Shown here: positions 10,906 through 33,345 of the stretch, piece after piece
How the letters are laid out: each line of letters starts with the position of its first letter
How positions within the stretch are numbered: the first letter of the stretch is position 1
Origin: Blastocladiella emersonii ATCC 22665
Lineage: Eukaryota > Fungi > Blastocladiomycota
Assembly: GCA_025594325.1 (NCBI GenBank)
Contig: JANHCV010000005.1
Span: forward strand, 620,001 to 684,000
Length of the DNA stretch: 64,000 bases
Direction of reading: 5' to 3'
Notes under the pieces: model-generated
What the model saw: the letters and a program-made list of their open reading frames with translations, nothing else
Databases searched by the model: none
What the model was told of the DNA's origin: nothing
Position numbers and translations under genes: made by a program

Positions 10906-12054
10906 TTACTCTTCGACCTTGGCCTTGCGGTCCGCCGCGGGCGCCGGGCTCTTGCCCCGCTTCTCCTGCTGCGAGGACACGGAGCGGAGGACGAGCTTGC
11001 ACGCGAAATTGGCGGCCGAGAAGATGGGGAGGCGGGGCACGGCGACGTACGCGCGCTCGACGTTGGGCGGGTTGCCGATCTCGCCCAAGTTGAGGCTGCG
11101 CGTTCCCGCGACGAGCACGGGCGCGCGGCCGCCGGCGGGCGGCGGGGTGGTCATGGTCGCAGTGATGATGTAGAGCGGGAACAGGAGCGCAAAGACGGCG
11201 CCCGTGACGATCGGGTTGCCGTAGAAGGTGAGGGCCGTGGTGGGCAGGCCGAACCCGAGGTAGTACGGCCAGCGCTCCTCCATGTGTCTGAGCCGCGCCT
11301 CGAGCGACCAGCCCTGGCTCGCCCACTTGTACTCGAAGCTGTACATGGCGTACATCCACGACGTGAGGGCGAAACTGAGCACGGGCCCGAGCGCCGGCGC
11401 GAAATACGCGACCATGGCGACCGACAGGTGCACGACGCTCAGCAGGCCGCGGTACAGCTCGTCGACAATGTTCTGGGTCCACTTCTTGCGCACGCGCGGC
11501 GACGCCGGCGGGGCGTCGGCGTTCCCGCGGCCCAGCGTGCGGAGTTGCGCCTGGCGGATGTCGAGCGACCGCCGCGCAATGTCCGTGTACCACATCGAGT
11601 TGAGGACGAACGACAGCGCGTACACCGGGTACACCCAGAACACGTGGTACAGGATGTGCACCGCCGTGTCGACGACGGCGAAGGCGGTGCTGCCCGCGAG
11701 CGGGTCCTCCCCCGCGACCGCGGGTTCGGGTAGCGTCCACGCGAACAGCAGCGCGAGTAGCTGCTTGACGACCAGGTGGTAGAAGACGAGGCTGCCGAGC
11801 AGCAGCACGCCGTTCAGCAGGAAGCACTTGAGCGCGGCGCGCTGGATCTGCGTCGACGAGTACGCCACGACCAGCGCCGTCGGAACGTGCACCGTGGCGT
11901 CCTTGACCCCGAGCACCAGCTGGTCCTTGATCACGGCAAGCGACTCGAGCGGCGCGAACCGAGCGCGGGTGCTGCTCTCACGGGCCACAGGCGAGGGCAC
12001 CGCGGAGGGGATGGCGGCAGCGGTGGCGGCGGAGGTCTCGGCCACGGATGCCAT
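10906..12054 (-). CDS. EI24 (etoposide-induced 2.4)/autophagy-associated multi-pass membrane protein
   Basis: Intronless 382-aa ORF: KCFLLNGVLLLGS, FWVYPVYALSFVLNSMWYTDIA, YSFEYKW...WSLEARLRHMEERWPYYLGFGLP. Confidence 0.8.
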   Translation of the reverse strand: MASVAETSAATAAAIPSAVPSPVARESSTRARFAPLESLAVIKDQLVLGVKDATVHVPTALVVAYSSTQIQRAALKCFLLNGVLLLGSLVFYHLVVKQLLALLFAWTLPEPAVAGEDPLAGSTAFAVVDTAVHILYHVFWVYPVYALSFVLNSMWYTDIARRSLDIRQAQLRTLGRGNADAPPASPRVRKKWTQNIVDELYRGLLSVVHLSVAMVAYFAPALGPVLSFALTSWMYAMYSFEYKWASQGWSLEARLRHMEERWPYYLGFGLPTTALTFYGNPIVTGAVFALLFPLYIITATMTTPPPAGGRAPVLVAGTRSLNLGEIGNPPNVERAYVAVPRLPIFSAANFACKLVLRSVSSQQEKRGKSPAPAADRKAKVEE

Positions 12055-16336: not shown

Positions 16337-17536
16337 TTAGTTGACGAAAACCAGCTTGTTGGGAGTACCCTTGGTGCCCGTAATCTTGTTGGGCGTGGCC
16401 TTGCTGAGCAGCTGCGACACGACCTGCGACACCGTGAACGATGGGTTGGCGCCGAGAATTAGGCTGGCCGCGCCGGCGACGTGCGGCGACGCCATGGACG
16501 TGCCCGAGATGGTGTTGGTTGCGCCGTTGTTCCACGTCGACGTAATGGCGACGCCTGGCGCGATGATGTCGACGCACCCGCTGCCGTAGTTGGAAGAGGA
16601 CGCCAGCGCGTCCGTCTTGGTCGACGAGGCGACCGTCACGGCCGACGGCTCCGAGGCCGGCGACACGTTGCACGCGTCCTGCGACTCGTTGCCCGCGGCC
16701 ACGACTGCCACAACGCCCGGGTTGACGAGCGACTTGATGGCCGCGTTCACGGCGGCCGATTTTCCGCCACCGAGCGACATGTTGGCCACCGCCGTCTTGC
16801 CCGCGGCCTTGGCCTGCGCCGCGACCCAGTTGATGCCCGCGATCACGCCCGAGTTGGTGCCGCTGCCGTCATCGCCCAGGACCTTGACTGCGACGATCGA
16901 AGCAGCCTTGGCGACGCCGTACTTCTTGGACGCAATGGTCCCTGCGACGTGCGTGCCGTGCCCGTTGCCGTCGCCGTCGGACCACGACGCGTCGGCCTTG
17001 AACCCGAAGGTGGCGCGGCCCTCGAGCTCTGGGTGCGACACCAGCACGCCCGTGTCGATGACGTAGGCCGTGACGCCCGCGCCCGCCGAGTCCGGGTACG
17101 TGTAGCCCGCCGCCAGGTTGAGGTCGCGCTGGCCGACGCGCGTCAGGCCCCACGAGCCAGCAGGCGTCTGCGTCGCCGTCGCGTACACGGTTGCGTCGGC
17201 CTCGACCGCCGCCACCTTGCCGTTGGCCTGCAGCCGCTTGATGAGCCCCGGCGCAAAGGTGCCGGCGTAGCCCTTGAAGTCACCCAAGGTGTCAAACTCG
17301 TGGTCGATCTTGGAGATGACGCCACTATTCCCGGCCTCGCGCGCGTTCTCGGCAGCGACCTCGGCCTTGAGGGCGCGCGAGAAGGCCTTGAGGTCCGTCT
17401 CGCCCTTGAGCGTCACAATGTAGCGGTCCTTGAGCGACACGGGCGCGCGGACAGCGGGCGCTGGTGCCGCCTCAGTCGAAGTCGACGCCGTCGCGAGGAC
17501 GAGCGCGAGCGCGGCGATGAGGGCTAGGATCTGCAT
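16337..17536 (-). CDS. Secreted subtilisin-like serine protease (S8A, proteinase K type) with I9 prodomain
   Basis: Signal peptide; prodomain (YIVTLK...GYAG...VEADATV); catalytic triad motifs AYVIDTG, GHGTHVAGT, GTSMASPHVAG; oxyanion AAGN. Confidence 0.96.
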   Translation of the reverse strand: MQILALIAALALVLATASTSTEAAPAPAVRAPVSLKDRYIVTLKGETDLKAFSRALKAEVAAENAREAGNSGVISKIDHEFDTLGDFKGYAGTFAPGLIKRLQANGKVAAVEADATVYATATQTPAGSWGLTRVGQRDLNLAAGYTYPDSAGAGVTAYVIDTGVLVSHPELEGRATFGFKADASWSDGDGNGHGTHVAGTIASKKYGVAKAASIVAVKVLGDDGSGTNSGVIAGINWVAAQAKAAGKTAVANMSLGGGKSAAVNAAIKSLVNPGVVAVVAAGNESQDACNVSPASEPSAVTVASSTKTDALASSSNYGSGCVDIIAPGVAITSTWNNGATNTISGTSMASPHVAGAASLILGANPSFTVSQVVSQLLSKATPNKITGTKGTPNKLVFVN

Positions 17537-24700: not shown

Positions 24701-24911
24701 CTGCACTGCTCATCATCGCGTCTCGCATGTCTCGCACTGCGCCCACGGCTCCGTCAGTCGGTCCTGTGCCCCCTTCGTTGCACTCGCGGAGTCCTCGCCG
24801 CATGCGTGTCACCTCCGATCGTATAAATCCGGGCTGTACCCCGCTCTCCCACCGCTTGTTTAACACGCTTGCATACCTTGCTCACGTATCCGACGAACCT
24901 AATATCAAAGA

Positions 24912-26022
24912 ATGGGTCGCACTTAGCTCCACTCTGCCCAGCGCCAGGCCGTGCACCAGCACCAGGCCCAGGAGCAACAACAACAACGCGCCCACTGCGA
25001 AGCAGCAGCAGCAGCTCAAGGCCGCGGCGCCTGCTCAGCCGCAGCAGCAGCAGACCCGTGTCCATCCGCCGCAGCTCAAGCAGGCTGCCCCCGCCGCCGC
25101 CGCTCAGCAGCAGAAGCAGGCCCTGCAGCAGGCCCGCGCGCAGTCGGCTCAGCCCAAGCAGGCCGCTGCGTCCATTGCTCCTCAGCAGCAGCTCAAGGCC
25201 GCGGCGCCCGCTAAGCAGCAGCCGCAGGCTCGCGCTCAGCCTCCGCAGCTCAAGCAGCAGCAGCAGGCTGGCACCCAGTCGGCGGCCGCCGCGCAGGTGT
25301 ACCGCGCCACGCCCGTCCGCGAGCATCCCGACGACGCGTTCCTCTCGGGCGCGTGGATGTTTGACGAGGCCCGCGTCCCGCAGTGGATGGCGCCGCAGCT
25401 GCCCAAGGCCCAGCAGCAGCAGCAGGCCCGCGCCGCTCAGCCCACCGCTGCTGCTCGCGCCCAGTCGCCTCAGCAGCAGCAGCGCAAGCAGGCCGCTCCC
25501 GCTGCCGCCGCCACGCCTGCGAAGCAGCAGCAGGCCGCCCGCGCTTAACTCCCGCGCAACACCGCTGCCGTGATCCCCGTTGGCGCGGTGCGCGCCAAGA
25601 ACGCGTCGGCCGACGACGCCTTCTTCTCGGGCTCGTGGCTCTTTGACTCGGCCGCCGCGCCGCAGTGGTTCCAGTCGCAGCTGCCCGCTCCCAAGGCCCA
25701 GCAGGCGCAGCCCCAGCCCCAGCAGCTGCCTCAGCAGCTCAAGCAGCAGGCCACCGCTCCTCGCGCGCAGTCGGCTCAGATCAAGCAGGCTGCCTCCCCG
25801 ACTCAGCAGCAGCAGCAGACCCGTGTCCAGTCGCCGCAGCTCAAGCAGGCTACCCCCGCCGCCGCCGCTCAGCAGCAGAAGCAGGCCCCGCAGCAGGCCC
25901 GCGCGCAGTCGCCGCAGCTCAAGCAGGCCGCCCCTGCTCCGCAGCAGCAGAAGCATCAGACCCAGAAGCAGCAGGACCAGCGCCGCCCACAGTCGCCGAC
26001 CCGCGGCAACAAGCGCGCGTAG
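24912..26022 (+). pseudogene. Gln/Ala-rich repeat protein gene with two DDAF.SG.W.FD...PQW..QLP motifs, disrupted
   Basis: ATG 24912 MGRT*(TAG 24924)LHSAQRQAVHQHQAQEQQQQ, a frameshift in the (CAA)n run, a Q/A repeat ORF to an in-frame TAA (25546-25548), then continuation in the same frame to 26022. Confidence 0.7.
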
Positions 26023-27220
26023 CGGCCTCAACGCGTAACGATACCCTTGGCACGCATCGCGAGGAGCGAAATCGGCTCTCCACGATGATTGTGCTATCAA
26101 TAAATGCTTTCTCTAACCTTTCACGTATCGGAGAATCGGTGGACGCGTCGCGATATCATGTGGCGGCCAAGTGACGCGGCGGAGACAGTTTCGTTCGCGC
26201 CGCGAAGCGACCATCGTCGTCGGCTGCCTTGACCGTTCCTCTCACCGCTCACCACCACTCGCCATGAATCCGATGAACGAATCGATGCCATGTAATCACG
26301 CGATGACGTTGACTTGCTGCATTATGGCTCTCGCGCGTCCAAGTTCTTCTCGGCCGAACCGCACTGCACTGCACCCGCTCGAACGAAGCAAGCGGGCGGG
26401 GCCTCGTGCCAGGTCGACCCTCTCCAATGGTCGACTCGAATATAATCGACCCGACGGCGATGAGTTGCCCTTGAACCAGAAAGATGTGCGTCTCGAACGA
26501 CCGACTTGGTGCTTGGTGCCGTTGCCGCCCCAGAACGATCATCAAACACACTTTGCCGGTGATCCTAGTGAGTCTTGAAGTTGTTTCCAAACTGCGTTTC
26601 TCGAACTGCAGCCGTGATTGCGACAAGGGGGATGGAAACCTAGAGGATCTGTCTCAATTAGCGCGCTGTCCGTGCTGATGTGCTTGCATCAGCTGGTGTC
26701 GCCACCCTTGGTGCACAGTTGTCGGTGATCCCCGAGGTACGGGCGGGGCGGCAGCCTGCGCGGAATCATCGTCCAAGCGTGCCTGGCCATGCTTTGGCCG
26801 CGACCCGGCCCGCGGCGCGGACCAAGCAGCGGTTAGTGAATACGACCGCAGGCAGGTTGTATGCAGCCCAGTTGGCCGGGTCACGCACGGGTGGTCACCT
26901 TGCCAAGCGCGTGGATCAGGAACTAGTGCCCGCGTTCGACGACTCTGTAGGCGCCCGGGTTGTATCGCGTTGTGCGCGTTACCTGGCACCCGCGTAGGCC
27001 GGCCTGGTATTAGCGAAGCGACTTTTCATGCGATATTTGGGAGCTCTCAATTCAAGTTCAAGCCTGGCTCGACGCGACGCGCCACTCGCGTGATGTGGCG
27101 CCGCCACAGCGAAGGTCTGAGTGCGCTCACACGAGATCGGCAGAAACTTACTATAGTGGCACAAGTTTTAACCTCTGATAGTTAGGTCGTATACCATCAT
27201 GTGAACGAATGATGTGACAT

Positions 27221-28003
27221 TCACAGATCAAGTGAAACGAACTTGGATAGCTGCGGTGCCGCGCGTGTAAGTTCCTGGCGAGCCCACTCTGGGAGGACCA
27301 CTTGGTCAGTTCCCTTGAAAAGGTCGCGGACGAGATGTTGGAGTTCATCAACACTTTTAATCTTGTCCAGCGCGCCGTTGGGCACAATTGTCAGGACGGC
27401 AGGAGGTAGAGAACCTCTCCCCACCTTGTCCCGGAGACAGCGAAACGTTTCGCGCGAGTCGATTTGGACGAAGATGCGGAGAACGAGACGTGCTGATTCC
27501 AGATACTTGCACGTAGGATGATTGTTTGGGTGTTCGCCGCCGACTCCAAAAAGCGAGCAAAGTCGTGACCAGGTATTGCGATCAGGGGTGATGTAGTACT
27601 CGGGGTGCGATGCCTTGCACATTTTCCACAGCACAAGGACGAGGTCACGCCAGACTCGCTGCGTCATTATTGGACACTCGCGGCAAATCGTTTTGCTCGA
27701 GTCGCCAAAGTAGTGGAAGCGCTGCGTTGCGCCTGCGGCCAGCTCGAGTTGACCAAGGGCCTGGATCACAACATCAAGGAAGAGGTATTCCTTCCCAGAC
27801 GCCGAAATGTTACGTAAAAGCTCCTGTTTGGCGGAGGGTGTCGCGAAAGCACTCGTAAGAAGCCACATCACGTCGATTGCAGTCGTGGGGCAGTCGAGCA
27901 GGTCCTCAGGAACCATGAGATCGCCTTCGTTGAAGAGAAAGTCTGACTGCCACTTGTCAGGTCTCGGTGCGACATTTTGGCGAAACGCATTGATGAAATC
28001 GTA
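27221..28003 (-). pseudogene. 5'-truncated member of uncharacterised 'family X' (paralog of the Fanzor N-terminal domain)
   Basis: Open frame from just after TAA (28004-28006): YDFINAF...MVPEDLL...CRECP...W..LC..F...EH...C...KVGRGSLPPAVLTIVPNGALD...EWA. This aligns by eye to the region upstream of the Fanzor nuclease domain. It could be expressed from the internal ATG at 27916. Confidence 0.6.
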
Positions 28004-28210
28004 TTAATCAACTATGACTAAAAAAACCTACGATAATCCCTACCAGACAATGGTTCGGGGACAGACTTCGATGGCCCAGCACAGGTGCAGCCTGGTTGGG
28101 ACCACCACCTTGAGGGGCTCCGCGGACCAAGTCCTTGGAGGCGAGCGTGCAAAGTACCAATCAGTGCACACCCGCACAAACCCCCCACACTGGCGGATAG
28201 TGAAGCCCGT
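28004..28210 (-). ncRNA. Candidate Fanzor omega-RNA scaffold (structured noncoding tract 3' of the nuclease ORF)
   Basis: Three hairpins on the minus strand: GCGGGTGTGCA/TGCACGCTCGC (11 bp with 2 G-U; 28141-28175), CTCC-AA-GGAC-TTG-GTCC-GC-GGAG (28118-28140) and CCCAACCAGG/CCTGTGCTGGG (28075-28100). A T7 tract lies at 28020-28026. The position matches known TnpB/Fanzor RNAs. Function is inferred. Confidence 0.5.
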
Positions 28211-30463
28211 CTACACCGTAGAAGGAGCGGCGGCAGGATCGTCGACGAGCACCAGCTTGTCGAGGTTCATGCACAGGATGTTGAGCGCCGCGTTGGTGTC
28301 GCGCTGGCGCTGGTCGCGGCACGCCGACGCGCACATGAGCGTCGCGTGCGGGGCCGACGGCGGGTGGACCATGTCGCAGTCGCCGTTCTTGGCCTCGTTG
28401 GGGCGCGCGAACGCGCACACGGCGCACCGTTTCGACGAGTAGTTCTCGTTGACGAGGTACACGTCGACTCGGCGCCGGCGGAGGTTCTTGACCATCTCGA
28501 CGATGGGCCCACGCGGCCCAGCCGAGATGATGCCGAAGTTGCCAAAGTTGCGGCCAACGAGCACGACCGCGTCCTTGAGCTCGAGGGCGAGGTCGTCCCA
28601 CCACTGGCGGCGAGAACACTCGGCGAAGAACTTGAGGCGTGCCACGCGACGGTCGAGCGCGTAGTCCAGGTACCGAGGCAGCACCTTGGTCATGACTGAC
28701 GTGTAGTTGCCGAGGTCACCCGACGCGCGCGCCCGCGAGAGCGCCGCGTCGAGCGCGGGAAGTCCACGTCTTGCGCGCCACATCTTCGTGCGTCGAGTCA
28801 GCAGGTAGGTCCGCACCTCGTGGTGGAAGTGACGGCTGCTGCACGAGCGGAAGAGAGCGCGCGACTTGGCGAGGAGGTGCACCCGTTGGCGCACGTACTC
28901 GGCCACGTCGGTCTTGTACTGCGGGTCGTTGATCGTGAGCGAGAACTCGACGAGCGACTTGAGGTACTTGAGGGCCTCGATGATCTTGGTGGTGGCGATG
29001 AAGGCGACGTACTGGTTCTTGACGCCGGGGTCCATGACAACGACAAGCTGGCCAACGCGGACCTCGATCAGGCCCAGGTGGATCTTCATGCCGGCGTCAG
29101 GGCCGTCGGGCGGGGCGGGCTCGGTGGCGAGCGGCTGCATGAGCGGGTCGAAGGCGACGTAGTCTGGGTCGGTCTCGAGCGGGACGCGCTTCTTGGCCGT
29201 CGCGCGAGGGCGGCCCGTGGCGACACCCTGGGTCTTGGGGCGGATGCCGTTGAGGTAGTCGGTGACGCGGACCGCGTACCCGTCCGTCTTGATCTCGCCA
29301 TTGAACTTGTTGACGAGCGACCCGTCGGGCACCTTGCGGTAGACGACCTTCTGCTTGAGCACCTCGGACGCCGACCACAGGATGCGGTCCCACGTCTCCT
29401 TGGCCACCTCGGCCTTCCCGAGGTTCTTGAACTTGCGCCGGCCGTCAACGTCGACGAACACCTTCTCGGCCGACCCTGGCGACTTGCGCGCGAGCTCGAC
29501 GCCGTGGTACTTGAGCAGGTAGTGGAGCCCGATCATGCTCACGGGGACGAAGCGGCGGTGCAGGTCGAGGACGGGGGCGAGCTGGACCTCGGGGAAGTTG
29601 GGCGACACCAGACCGCGCTCCTTGTACGACTTGAGCAGGTCGCGCATGCGGAGCAGGTTCGTGTACACGTTGGCCGTGAACGAGACGCGGGCCTCGTCGC
29701 GGATGCAGTACACGATGTCCCAGTACAGGGCCTTGCGGAACGACTTGGAGATCTTGTACTTGGACCCGTTGAGGATGGCGTCGTCAAGGAACTTGGCCGT
29801 CTTCTCGAGCCGCTCGCGGCGCTTGGCCTCGGTCTTGGCGTGCTTCTTGACGCGGCGGCTTGGTCTCGGCGTGCGCCCGGGGGTGGTCGGGGCGCCACAC
29901 GCACTGTTGGGGTTGCCGGTCGACGAGGTGCTGGTGCTTGTGGCCGGCGTCGGCGAGGTCGGTGCACAGGCAGGGCGAGGAGGAGCAGGGACGACACCGG
30001 TGATGTCGCCGTGGAACAGGATCGCCCAGTCCGAGTTCTTCGCGTCGCTCGGCCCAGCGCGGAGCTTGGAGATAAGATCTGCGAGCACCGCTGGTTCAGC
30101 AGGCCCATCCAGAGCGCCATCGGGGATCATTTGCGTGACGGCTCGCGGGAGGCCACTTGAGCTAACCTTGAGCTGGAACGCATCAAACACTCTCTGAGGA
30201 TCGCTCTCCAGGAGCAGACGCACGACGGGACGAGAGGAAGCAAACCGGCTGCACCGACGACCGTGAATGTGCTCGTGTCTGTCGATGAAGTACTTGCATA
30301 GTTTCTTCCATGGCTTCTCAACGGGTGGAAGTAGCCCGCTCAAGGGCGCGGGCGCACATTTCGTCCGCAATGCCTTGAGAAGCGAAGTCCAGAGATCTCG
30401 AAATGCGAGTGGACAATCAGTGCAGAGCGTCCCATGACGCTGCGAAGAGAAACGCAAGAGCAT
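28211..30463 (-). CDS. Fanzor1-type (TnpB-like) RNA-guided RuvC endonuclease with an extra N-terminal domain
   Basis: FNGEIKTDGYAVRV motif; RuvC-I VVVMDPG (D at 29030-29032); VLVGRNFG followed by relocated RuvC-II VYLVNENYSSK (E at 28445-28447); Zn finger CAVC...CASAC; RuvC-III RDTNAALNI (D at 28298-28300). The first in-frame ATG is at 30463 (750 aa). Confidence 0.88.
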   Translation of the reverse strand: MLLRFSSQRHGTLCTDCPLAFRDLWTSLLKALRTKCAPAPLSGLLPPVEKPWKKLCKYFIDRHEHIHGRRCSRFASSRPVVRLLLESDPQRVFDAFQLKVSSSGLPRAVTQMIPDGALDGPAEPAVLADLISKLRAGPSDAKNSDWAILFHGDITGVVPAPPRPACAPTSPTPATSTSTSSTGNPNSACGAPTTPGRTPRPSRRVKKHAKTEAKRRERLEKTAKFLDDAILNGSKYKISKSFRKALYWDIVYCIRDEARVSFTANVYTNLLRMRDLLKSYKERGLVSPNFPEVQLAPVLDLHRRFVPVSMIGLHYLLKYHGVELARKSPGSAEKVFVDVDGRRKFKNLGKAEVAKETWDRILWSASEVLKQKVVYRKVPDGSLVNKFNGEIKTDGYAVRVTDYLNGIRPKTQGVATGRPRATAKKRVPLETDPDYVAFDPLMQPLATEPAPPDGPDAGMKIHLGLIEVRVGQLVVVMDPGVKNQYVAFIATTKIIEALKYLKSLVEFSLTINDPQYKTDVAEYVRQRVHLLAKSRALFRSCSSRHFHHEVRTYLLTRRTKMWRARRGLPALDAALSRARASGDLGNYTSVMTKVLPRYLDYALDRRVARLKFFAECSRRQWWDDLALELKDAVVLVGRNFGNFGIISAGPRGPIVEMVKNLRRRRVDVYLVNENYSSKRCAVCAFARPNEAKNGDCDMVHPPSAPHATLMCASACRDQRQRDTNAALNILCMNLDKLVLVDDPAAAPSTV

Positions 30464-31417
30464 CGGCAAAGCGCGGCACGGGCTCGAACGCGCGCGCGTA
30501 ACTCTGGCGGTCAAATTCGAACGAATCTGCCGCGTCGCCGTTGAGGATCAAGTATCCCCAGTGCCTGCGGCGAAGTGGCATGTTGAGCTGCGGACGGCAA
30601 TGGAGCCGTTGCGGAATTCGGCCGTGGCCCGAATTTCGCGGCACGTGTCGCTAGCTGGCGTGAACACGCGACGCGTCGCCGCCGCCAGCTTGAGGGCTTG
30701 CCCGCGGCCTGCCACCCCTCTCGCTGCTCGCGCGATCCGGGCGACAGCGCAACCCCAGGCCCGAACTTTGAGGCCTCGTGTTGCGGTCGCGGCTGAAATG
30801 AGCGGGGTGTGACGGGCGTGGCAGGCCGCCGCCGTTGCAGCAAGTCAGCGGCGCCGCGCGTCTCGTGGACGCGCCAGCCAGCGACACGTGCCGCAGAATT
30901 CGGACCACGGCCGAATTCCGCAACGGCTCCAATGCGCGACGACGGCGTCGAGAAGCTGACGCGAAAGCTCCGTCCAGCAAGACGCGACGCTGCGGACGAT
31001 GAGGTGGACAAGCTTGACAGGATAGGTCGTATGCACGAGGTCATCTTCACCGTCACTGTCATCCTCACCGAACAGGTCACGCATTTCTGCATCCAAGTAC
31101 TGCGCCAGGCACCCGGGATCCGCGGCGCTGGTGCTAACGCGGCGGCACAGACCATTGATATACCCAAGCGGCAAAGTCGGCTGCTCGTTATTGAGTCGAT
31201 AAGCCAGCCGGTTGACACGGGAATGGGCCCAGACAAACTCGGCATGGTCGTCCCGGGCGAGCACGACGAGCGAAGTCGACGCTGCCGCGACCGCTGCGCG
31301 TGGAGTCGCGAGTTGAAGGACGACCGTCCCGACCTCGAGAGGAAGCCGATCAAGTCCATAATGCAGGCCGCCCGGATCGTTTTCATTAGATTGCATCGAG
31401 TTGAGCATTGTTTCCAT
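30417..31417 (-). pseudogene. N-terminal part of the family X-Fanzor fusion ORF, interrupted by the MITE and a 1-nt frameshift
   Basis: METMLNS (ATG 31417)...GYINGLCRRV...DLFGEDDSDGEDDL...LLDAVVAH|MITE|CRPQLNMPLRRRHWGYLILNG...LAFLFAASW. A +1 shift near the GGG at 30431-30433 joins it to TLCTDCP of the Fanzor ORF. Confidence 0.72.
30602..30930. mobile_element. MITE, 329 bp, ~75-bp TIRs starting GGAGCCGTTGCGGAATTCGG, 3-bp AAT target-site duplication
   Basis: Left arm 30602-30675 and right arm 30857-30930 are near-perfect reverse complements. AAT lies at 30599-30601 and 30931-30933. An inner inverted pair is cggcctgccac/gtggcaggccg. Excision restores a reading frame. Confidence 0.9.
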
Positions 31418-31634
31418 TGAGAGTGAACGTGTCCTCTCGGCAGGGAGGAGAGAAGCGGTGGTGCCAGTTGTCGGATCACGGTGGCCTCCGAAACTCAAGG
31501 CAACTTTCTCGTGTCCGAAGACGCGCCTCGTCCTTCGTATCCCGTCTTACGTCTCGTCCCGTACGTGGTTGGTACTATCGAGGAATGTACTGTATTACGC
31601 GTCGATCCGCCGTATCACAAGGAAGCAACTCGGT

Positions 31635-33345
31635 CTACTCCTCCTTGGCGCGGTACAGGAGCAGGTACGCGATGTGGCCGTCGGCCGAGGAGCCCGAGTT
31701 CTTGAGCACGTCGGCCTCGGTGACGGGCGACACCTTGTCGTCGTCGAACTTGAACCAGTCCTTGCCGTCCTTGGCCCACTACACGCGCAGCAGTCAAGGC
31801 GCAGGTCAGTTCGGGGTCGCGTTCGAGCTCGGCACCGCGGCACGAACACGTACGGCAATGTAGTGTCCGCTGTCCGACGACGCGCCGATATGGGTGAGCA
31901 CGGCGCACAGCTCGTAGACGCCCGACTTGTTGCACGTGGCGTCGGCCGCGAGGTCCGGGTGCGCGTTGCCGCCGTCGCGCTTGGCGCGGAGCTTGTCCTG
32001 GAGCTCGGGCGTGCAGTACTTGTACATGTCGAGCTCGGTCGAGTACGCCACGTTCTACACATCGTCCATCAGTCAGTCTTCGCCAACCACACCCGCCACT
32101 CCCAAAGCAACGTACACGGCGGATCTTGACACGCTGCTTGATATCGGCGCGCCAGAAGAAGCGGGCAAAGTGGATGGTGAGGTACTTTGGGAGCCGCGCG
32201 ACCTGCGCCTTGACCGTGTACGAGGCGGTGCGGCCAAGGGCGGCCGAGTTCTTCTCGAGCTTCTGCACGAGCGACTCGGCAATCGACTGCTGCACGTTGT
32301 TGACCTGGGCCGAGATGTGGCAGGTCATGCGGAGGTCCGAGGTCGCCGTGGTCGTCTCCATTTCGCCGGCCGCCGCCGCCGCCGGGTCGTCGCACGTCGT
32401 CGTGTTGGTGAACTCGACGCCCATGAGCTTTTCGAGCGAGGAGGACGAGTCCGCGGACGCCGCATCGCCAGCCTTGGGCGGTGCAACACCGGCCTTGACC
32501 GCCGTCAAGAGCTGGTTCCACGCCTCCTCGGCGTCCTGCTGCGCGTACTGCCCGGAGCGGGGCTCCTGCTGGGCGAACTGCGGGTAGGCGGTGCGGAAGG
32601 CGGCGAGAAAGGCGAGCGGGGGCACGGCGTCGTCGGTCGGGACGGGGGCGTTGAGCTGCTTGTAGAGGTCGCGCAAGGCGACGGCGACGTTGCCGATCGT
32701 GTCCTGCGAGTACTTGCGGTTGGCGTCGGCCTCGAGCGCGGCCTGCATCTCGCGGACCTGGCGCAGGCACTGCAGCGTCGCGTTCATGTAGCACGTGTTG
32801 CCGAGGTTGGTGAGGCCGACGGGCGCGCGCGTCAGGGTCGCCGACTGGCCCGGCTTCAGGTCCTCGATGAACGTCGGCTTGGTCTCGGGCGCCTTGGGCA
32901 GCTCGCCCACGGTGCCCATCATGAGGAACGACGCGCCCTACACACGAGTTGTATCAGCCGCTGGTCGCGCGTGTGCGTGCGTGAGAGCGCGAGTGGGGAC
33001 GTACATCCTTGAGCCCCTTGAACTTGGTCCACTCGTCGTCGTCCTTGACCTGCACGCCCTTGAGCAGCAGCTTCTGGCGGTCGGGCGACACGCCCGAGAG
33101 CGAGTACAGGACCGTCTTGAACACGATCGGCGGCTGCGACTCTGTGGGATGACTGGCGCGTCAGCGGGCGCCCTTCGTGTCGGGAGAACGAGGGCGTGCG
33201 TGCGTACCGTCGAGCTCGACGTCGTACTTTTGCGTCGTCCACTTGACAGAGACTACGGGGTGACGCGGTGGGTGGCGTGGTCGGTCAGCACCGTGGTCGC
33301 GATCGGCGTCGTTGCATGGTGAAGCGCTGCATGGTTACCCTTCAT
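31635..33345 (-). CDS. UBP6: Proteasome-associated deubiquitinase Ubp6/USP14 (multi-exon)
   Basis: Spliced UBL MKVSVKWTTQKYDVELD...FKTVLYSLSGVSPDRQKLLLKG; Cys box GLTNLGNTCYMNATLQCL; QQDAEE; His box THIGASSDSGHYIA; WFKFDDDKVS; HIAYLLLY. Confidence 0.95.

Follow-up and report, generated by a model that had tools for sequence, protein, structure and literature searches.

How does a gene for a transposon-type nuclease persist in a fungal genome with no transposon recognizable around it? This question is raised by a 64,000-nucleotide (nt) stretch of DNA from the fungus Blastocladiella emersonii ATCC 22665, here called the window, whose minus strand contains a long open reading frame (ORF) for a Fanzor protein. 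To our knowledge, Fanzors are the sole known RNA-guided DNA endonucleases of eukaryotes; they are under development as compact genome editors. The reading favored here, which is probable rather than firm, is that this is a Fanzor1-family gene, that its product would act as an RNA-guided cutter supplied with an omega-RNA from the gene's own 3ʹ end, and that the gene has been retained outside a transposon. Coordinates are window positions, and features of the Fanzor gene lie on the minus strand.

The identity of the protein as a Fanzor or related TnpB-type nuclease, proposed in the initial annotation, receives support from three sources: Pfam, a family profile run against solved structures, and a structure prediction. 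Pfam PF07282 (Cas12f1-like TNB zinc finger) matches residues 679-746 with 28.5 bits (cutoff 26.3). The NCBIfam TnpB model scores only 14 bits, well under its cutoff, and the single sequence found no match among solved structures, so that a family profile was required. Searched against all solved structures, a profile of 20 relatives ranked SpuFz1, the Fanzor1 of Spizellomyces punctatus, first (E 7e-15), with weaker matches to PpFz1 (E 1e-4), TnpB (E 1e-4), ApmFz2 (E 2.5e-4) and Cas12f (E 1e-4 or weaker). An AlphaFold2 model was built for residues 226-767, the Fanzor1 core (28214..29839), which is marked by this profile match, by the model's scores and by codon usage. The predicted local distance difference test (pLDDT) exceeds 90 over model residues 245-530, the C-terminal 290 residues that comprise RuvC and the TNB zinc finger. 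Structural alignment with VIA-align superposes the model on SpuFz1 (8gkh) over 225 residues with a Z of 13.8 and a root-mean-square deviation of 3.5 Å, spanning SpuFz1 residues 364-623; Z falls to 11.1 for PpFz1, 9.7 for ApmFz2, 9.5 for TnpB, 9.2 for GtFz1 and 8-9 for Cas12f. The structure search was also run as a refutation test, and the best Foldseek matches (50 of 50) were all Fanzor, Cas12 or TnpB, with no non-TnpB RNase H fold among them. By profile E-values and structural Z-scores, the protein is a Fanzor1, with Fanzor2 and prokaryotic TnpB both more distant, and its predicted fold is a TnpB-type RuvC nuclease interrupted by a zinc finger (TNB). The gene is a new, highly diverged addition to a family on record in fungi, not a new kind.

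The active site agrees with this placement residue by residue. The motifs first picked out of the sequence all lie in one minus-strand frame: FNGEIKTDGYAV (residues 404-415), MDPG of RuvC-I (494-497), VLVGRNFG (651-658), VNENYSS (688-694), CAVC (697-700), CASAC (728-732) and RDTNAALNI of RuvC-III (738-746). In the HMMER alignment, where the SpuFz1 chain is a maltose-binding protein fusion with its numbering offset by 394 residues, D495 corresponds to SpuFz1 D383, E690 to E541 and D739 to D606, the residues that coordinate two magnesium ions in the cryo-EM structure (PMC10432273). D495 (29030..29032) is kept in 14 of the 16 relatives that cover the site. Gly654 (28553..28555), at the canonical RuvC-II position, aligns with the glycine of SpuFz1 VVMGDWS, and the relocated glutamate E690 (28445..28447) follows 36 residues later; a Gly or Pro at the canonical RuvC-II glutamate site, with an alternative conserved Glu approximately 45 residues downstream, is a hallmark of Fanzors (PMC10530073). 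Across the family alignment, G654, E690, C697, C700, C728, D739 (28298..28300) and N741 are invariant or nearly so, and PF07282 covers the four zinc-finger cysteines C697, C700, C728 and C732 (28319..28426). The order D, Gly at RuvC-II, relocated E and D that had been described from the motifs is confirmed by this alignment, and on sequence grounds the catalytic triad of D495, E690 and D739 appears complete. A basic patch, RRVKKHAKTEAKRRERLEK (residues 221-238; 29801..29854), was also read from the sequence; it may be a nuclear localization signal, which it resembles and which Fanzors are reported to have gained (PMC10530073).

Whether this frame is a real gene is a separate matter. The whole open frame runs without interruption from 30514 to 28211 (767 codons including the stop at 28211-28213), beginning at TTG with its earliest ATG at codon 18, whereas the database gene model (P0001) is a single exon of 639 amino acids at 28211-30130 that starts at M129 (coordinate 30130). 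The interval originally marked, 28211-29850, lies within this ORF, but the true frame extends approximately 660 nt further at the 5ʹ end; position 29850 is the point at which the G+C content of third codon positions (GC3) reaches approximately 0.95. Contigs assembled independently from short reads (three DNA runs on the source sample) show zero differences from the window over 28292-30630, so the frame is not an assembly artefact. Because the DNA is GC-rich and the opposite strand of the same stretch carries a chance ORF of 446 amino acids, an uninterrupted frame is by itself weak evidence; it is the conserved residues and the codon periodicity, not openness, that carry the evidence for a real gene.

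Codon usage divides the frame in two. Across residues 201-767, GC3 is 0.88-0.97 and locally 1.0, comparable with 0.90 in a neighboring subtilase gene, whereas the initial 200 codons are background-like (0.63-0.70) and the DNA flanking the gene has a GC3 of approximately 0.4-0.65 without periodicity. The step within the frame is abrupt (approximately 29870-30080): ahead of residue 145, GC3 is near 0.6, and beyond residue 211 it is 0.93 or more, with the transition crossing a Ser/Thr/Pro-rich linker, which suggests a chimeric origin or unequal constraint on the two halves. These profiles confirm the earlier impression of host-like codons in the nuclease part set amid decayed surroundings. A dead gene would lose such a bias with time; its presence points to constraint on the nuclease that is still in force or ended very recently, and to a long stay in this genome. 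Of 80 columns conserved in the family, the protein matches the consensus in 67, the top value among full-length members, in a test biased by the choice of relatives for their similarity to this very protein.

The same data bear on a less favorable account, judged unlikely, in which the gene is a decaying relic whose frame is open only because extreme GC3 makes stops rare and whose protein is no longer made or working. Long chance ORFs such as the opposite one are frequent here, and the N-terminal 200 codons have the GC3 of background. However, the GC3 of the nuclease part (0.9-1.0) stands far above the neutral flank level of approximately 0.55 and would have eroded after loss of function, the family-invariant residues are all kept along with the conserved columns just counted, and the terminal branch of the protein in a maximum-likelihood tree (0.78; median 0.74) is not a long one.

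The relatives of the gene are few and nearly all from one fungus. Searched exhaustively with HMMER, 1.84 billion representative proteins contained only 20 at the threshold of E 0.001, including the window's own. B. emersonii ATCC 22665 (GCA_025594325.1) accounts for 17 of them, again with the window's own included and all labelled as hypothetical proteins; metagenomes or unassigned assemblies are the source of the other three. The B. emersonii proteins separate from two metagenomic sequences in the tree, where the gene studied here forms a lone deep lineage. Scans of viral and metagenome data for relatives yielded none that was confirmed, and nowhere in the literature found is Blastocladiella mentioned together with Fanzor.

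Several of the paralogues are visibly damaged, which lends the relic account some of its appeal. P0010 is truncated. P0016 (KAI9188441.1, 871 amino acids) keeps the four zinc cysteines and has its three catalytic residues replaced by N, A and G, and in P0017 (KAI9183261.1) the RuvC-I Asp is replaced by Leu; judging from these substitutions, P0016 and P0017 may be nuclease-dead Fanzor derivatives or pseudogenes. Partial duplication is also in evidence. P0002 and P0007 (L001:5648-6636 versus L005:3990-5005) share approximately 1 kb at 90% identity, made up of upstream sequence and the N-terminal coding part, but have cores that are only approximately 30% identical; N-terminal modules seem to be exchanged within the family. 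P0008 is a 5ʹ-truncated copy of the P0006 gene at 93% identity (L007:4042-4944 versus L008:2974-3881); the common stretch of 908 nt reaches exactly 119 nt past the stop and then diverges abruptly, a second case of a 3ʹ-anchored partial copy beside the 3ʹ segment of the window's gene described below.

None of the hallmarks of a transposon (terminal inverted repeats, a target-site duplication, multiple near-identical copies) was found for the window's gene. No inverted repeats bound it, and the putative right end has no reverse-complement match anywhere in the window and no matching left end. The window holds no second Fanzor copy, the short-read contigs contain no copies at 80% identity or more over 28708-29075 or 30364-30547, and no copy more than 50% identical was found, the nearest paralogue being 42% identical. 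The initial annotation's remark that no transposase lies nearby is borne out in the ORFs tested, which comprised 10 ORFs at 14.9-23.7 kb and three beside the gene rather than an exhaustive six-frame scan; none encodes a transposase domain. A transposase-free Fanzor is unsurprising, because this is already the reported norm: SpuFz1 elements hold no transposase, and neither inverted repeats nor transposases occur at the GtFz1, NlovFz2 and MmeFz2 loci (PMC10432273). With one copy, no inverted repeats and a nearest paralogue of 42% identity, recent transposon-type activity is not supported.

Could the paralogues instead have been co-opted by the host, for example for genome defence or programmed DNA cutting, with guides supplied in trans by dispersed 3ʹ copies? 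This is improbable on present evidence, somewhat more so than the relic account. It would fit paralogues that are deep, few-copy and without transposases or inverted repeats; the eight paralogue loci examined sit amid housekeeping genes (CTP synthase, CDC37, Lon, ribosomal L39, cyclophilins). It would also fit the host-like codon usage and a 242-nt 3ʹ piece, described below, that occurs in approximately two more copies without the remainder of the gene. On the other hand, no orthologue from another species is present among the relatives to show a conserved position or sequence, the decay of several paralogues better fits selfish elements, and partial 3ʹ copies also arise from plain segmental duplication, as at L007/L008. 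Beside these loci, a weak match to a Plavaka transposase was noted 2.5 kb upstream of P0004 (L003:301-1527), the sole transposase-like neighbor at the nine loci inspected.

For the favored account of a retained RNA-guided nuclease, a candidate source of the guide RNA lies at the gene's 3ʹ end. When the short-read contigs of the three DNA runs were placed on 26500-32000 at 80% likeness or more, 28046-28287 emerged as a separate 242-nt contig with two to three times the depth of the flanking unique contigs: 83 against 27-41 in run X1, 329 against 140 in run X2, and 16.9 against 4-9 in run X3. Branch points of the assembly graph, taken from k-1 overlaps, fall exactly at 28045/28046 and 28287/28288. 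The segment comprises the last 77 nt of the ORF and 165 nt past the stop, begins directly after the RuvC-III motif and is the sole multi-copy part of the gene locus, the rest of the ORF being single copy. Its contig differs from the window by four substitutions (approximately 98% identity). The simplest reading is that approximately two further copies of this piece alone exist elsewhere in the genome, for a total of approximately three; none is present in the rest of the window or in the nine loci inspected.

The segment occupies the gene's 3ʹ end, the part that encodes the guide RNAs of TnpB and Fanzor (PMC10432273). All four substitutions affect nucleotides left unpaired by the predicted fold (p ~0.03 given 40% unpaired), and the variant sequence folds at least equally well. 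That 28046-28287 is an omega-RNA module, with the segment as candidate scaffold, is accordingly the lead interpretation, with prospects slightly better than even. Its principal competitor, which carries perhaps a one-in-three weight, is a small repeat or gene-conversion tract that contains no omega-RNA gene and whose overlap with the ORF end would be coincidental. In its favor, the fold is not significantly more stable than those of shuffled sequences (z -1.6), and mosaic partial duplications of the kind seen at L001/L005 are frequent among the paralogues. Set against it are the location from RuvC-III to 165 nt past the stop, which coincides with the known guide-RNA site, and the confinement of all differences to predicted loops. 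Rfam contributes nothing to the RNA interpretation, since the 3ʹ segment matches no family at gathering or permissive thresholds, and a search for a common 3ʹ RNA motif over seven paralogue loci returned coding-end similarity only. Past the segment, 19 unique nt (28027-28045) followed by seven T (28020-28026) could provide a guide and a terminator (28020..28045).

If the omega-RNA interpretation holds, the mechanism would resemble that of SpuFz1. A RuvC fold broken by a zinc finger carries a Fanzor-type site composed of D495, the relocated E690 and D739, with Gly654 in place of the old glutamate. The protein would bind an omega-RNA transcribed from its own 3ʹ end, from approximately 28287 down to 28046, with the guide continuing into the adjoining unique flank, and by analogy with SpuFz1 the complex would cut matching double-stranded DNA. 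The gene itself is an old paralogue, present once and one of at least 17 in the genome. Because it is such a paralogue and lies outside any recognizable transposon, active transposition is a less likely present role than retention or homing-type self-maintenance, or than some function for the host.

At its other end, the gene carries an N-terminal extension. Residues 29-164 (30023..30430; GC3 0.6-0.7) belong to a family, designated X, whose other copy is a free-standing ORF of 231 amino acids downstream (27221..27916, minus strand). This ORF, which has no database protein annotation, is a diverged paralogue of the extension (28% identity, E 1e-16). One X copy is fused in frame to Fanzor and the other stands alone, and both have low, background-like GC3. 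Family X has no Pfam match and no other relative in the databases searched. A foldback miniature inverted-repeat transposable element (MITE; 30599..30933, unstranded, with the element proper at 30602-30930) lies 83 nt upstream of the Fanzor frame, between it and an upstream ORF of 217 amino acids. It has 79-nt arms that are 89% complementary, a 3-bp direct repeat (minus-strand ATT) flanks it, and a three- to fourfold depth in short-read contigs indicates multiple copies. A 957-amino-acid fusion of the upstream ORF with the Fanzor frame was considered and rejected. Precise removal of the MITE and one 3-bp repeat leads the upstream ORF into another frame with a stop at 30417, and when that ORF is compared with the downstream X paralogue, no similarity to its first 75 residues can be detected.

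Together with the unremarkable fold and the empty Rfam search, several observations weigh against the reading of a working, retained nuclease. The N-terminal half of the AlphaFold2 model (the WED/REC part) is poor. The N-terminal extension has non-host codon usage, and an upstream in-frame stop with the MITE just past it closes the frame, as the relic account would have it. The zinc finger that the initial annotation described is present, but its second pair, C-ASA-C, has an atypical CX3C spacing that is unique in the family (CX2C in 17 of the 17 relatives having both cysteines), another point in favor of a relic. The consensus-column count carries the selection bias already given. Finally, CrFNuc-1, a Fanzor with intact motifs, showed no cleavage in vitro (PMC10530073).

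A bolder proposal is that B. emersonii maintains a deep, host-adapted and transposon-free Fanzor1 family, and that this member is programmed in trans by dispersed ghost 3ʹ RNA modules with differing guide flanks. The odds are well against it; if true, the fungus would possess a domesticated or self-maintaining multi-guide RNA-directed nuclease system. The more modest reading of a single retained Fanzor1 gene has consequences of its own. The Fanzor1 clade found here is very sparsely sampled and nearly all from one fungus, so that the gene enlarges known sequence space, and it is a reasonable candidate for biochemical testing. As a single-copy gene with host codons, without transposon ends and with its presumed RNA module repeated elsewhere, it bears on the roles of Fanzors after transposase loss. 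Conceptually it is not new, as fungal Fanzor1 proteins, transposase-less loci and ghost RNA loci are all on record.

The window belongs to a B. emersonii contig of 2.21 Mb, and the neighbors of the gene are ordinary host genes, for a ubiquitin C-terminal hydrolase (31615-32922), a subtilase (16337-17536) and an EI24-family protein (10906-12054). The assembly of the relatives, these neighbors, the host-like GC3 and the patch resembling a nuclear localization signal place the Fanzor gene in a eukaryotic genome to which it is adapted. Elsewhere in the window, 24754-26100 is a Gln/Ala-rich, repetitive, coding-like region with plus-strand frames and direct repeats of 62-155 nt. Two short stretches, 26649-26747 and 27071-27107, have raised depth and diverged copies in the short-read contigs and are probably small dispersed repeats.

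Among known systems, the bacterial enzymes ISDra2 TnpB (PDB 8H1J, 8EXA) and Cas12f share the RuvC and zinc-finger core (Z 9.5 and 8-9), and their guide RNA is likewise 3ʹ-encoded. However, they retain the glutamate at the canonical RuvC-II position where the B. emersonii protein has Gly654, are far smaller and move with a TnpA transposase. ApmFz2, a mimivirus Fanzor2 (PDB 9B0L), has the rearranged glutamate and the same core fold (Z 9.7), but its profile match is clearly weaker (E 2.5e-4, against 7e-15 to Fanzor1), and Fanzor2 proteins as a group are compact and go with elements of the IS607 type. PpFz1 of Parasitella parasitica and GtFz1 of Guillardia theta have the Fanzor1 fold (Z 11.1 and 9.2), and the GtFz1 locus likewise lacks inverted repeats and a transposase (PMC10432273); both match less well than SpuFz1 and have unlike REC insertions. 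Within the same phylum, Blastocladiomycota, Allomyces macrogynus carries Fanzor1 families, the AMa elements of Bao and Jurka 2013 (PMC3627910). No Allomyces protein is among the 20 relatives, and on that basis the B. emersonii clade is probably distant from the AMa families.

SpuFz1 (PDB 8GKH, 9CEU-9CEZ) is the closest counterpart. The two proteins differ considerably, as the superposed core is only approximately 16% identical and the B. emersonii protein has an added N-terminal domain and the CX3C second zinc pair. Their genomic circumstances differ as well: SpuFz1 exists in 19 full-length copies of approximately 82% identity with 30-nt inverted repeats, in contrast to a single-copy gene without detectable repeats. 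Nevertheless, SpuFz1 is the best match by both profile and structure, its D/E/D residues align one for one, and the WED motif FxGxIxTDG is common to both. Both hosts are early-diverging fungi, and neither element carries a transposase. Ghost omega-RNA loci and transposase-less Fanzor loci are known in S. punctatus (PMC10432273), and both genomes contain extra RNA-encoding ends without a gene, which in B. emersonii are presumed to be such.

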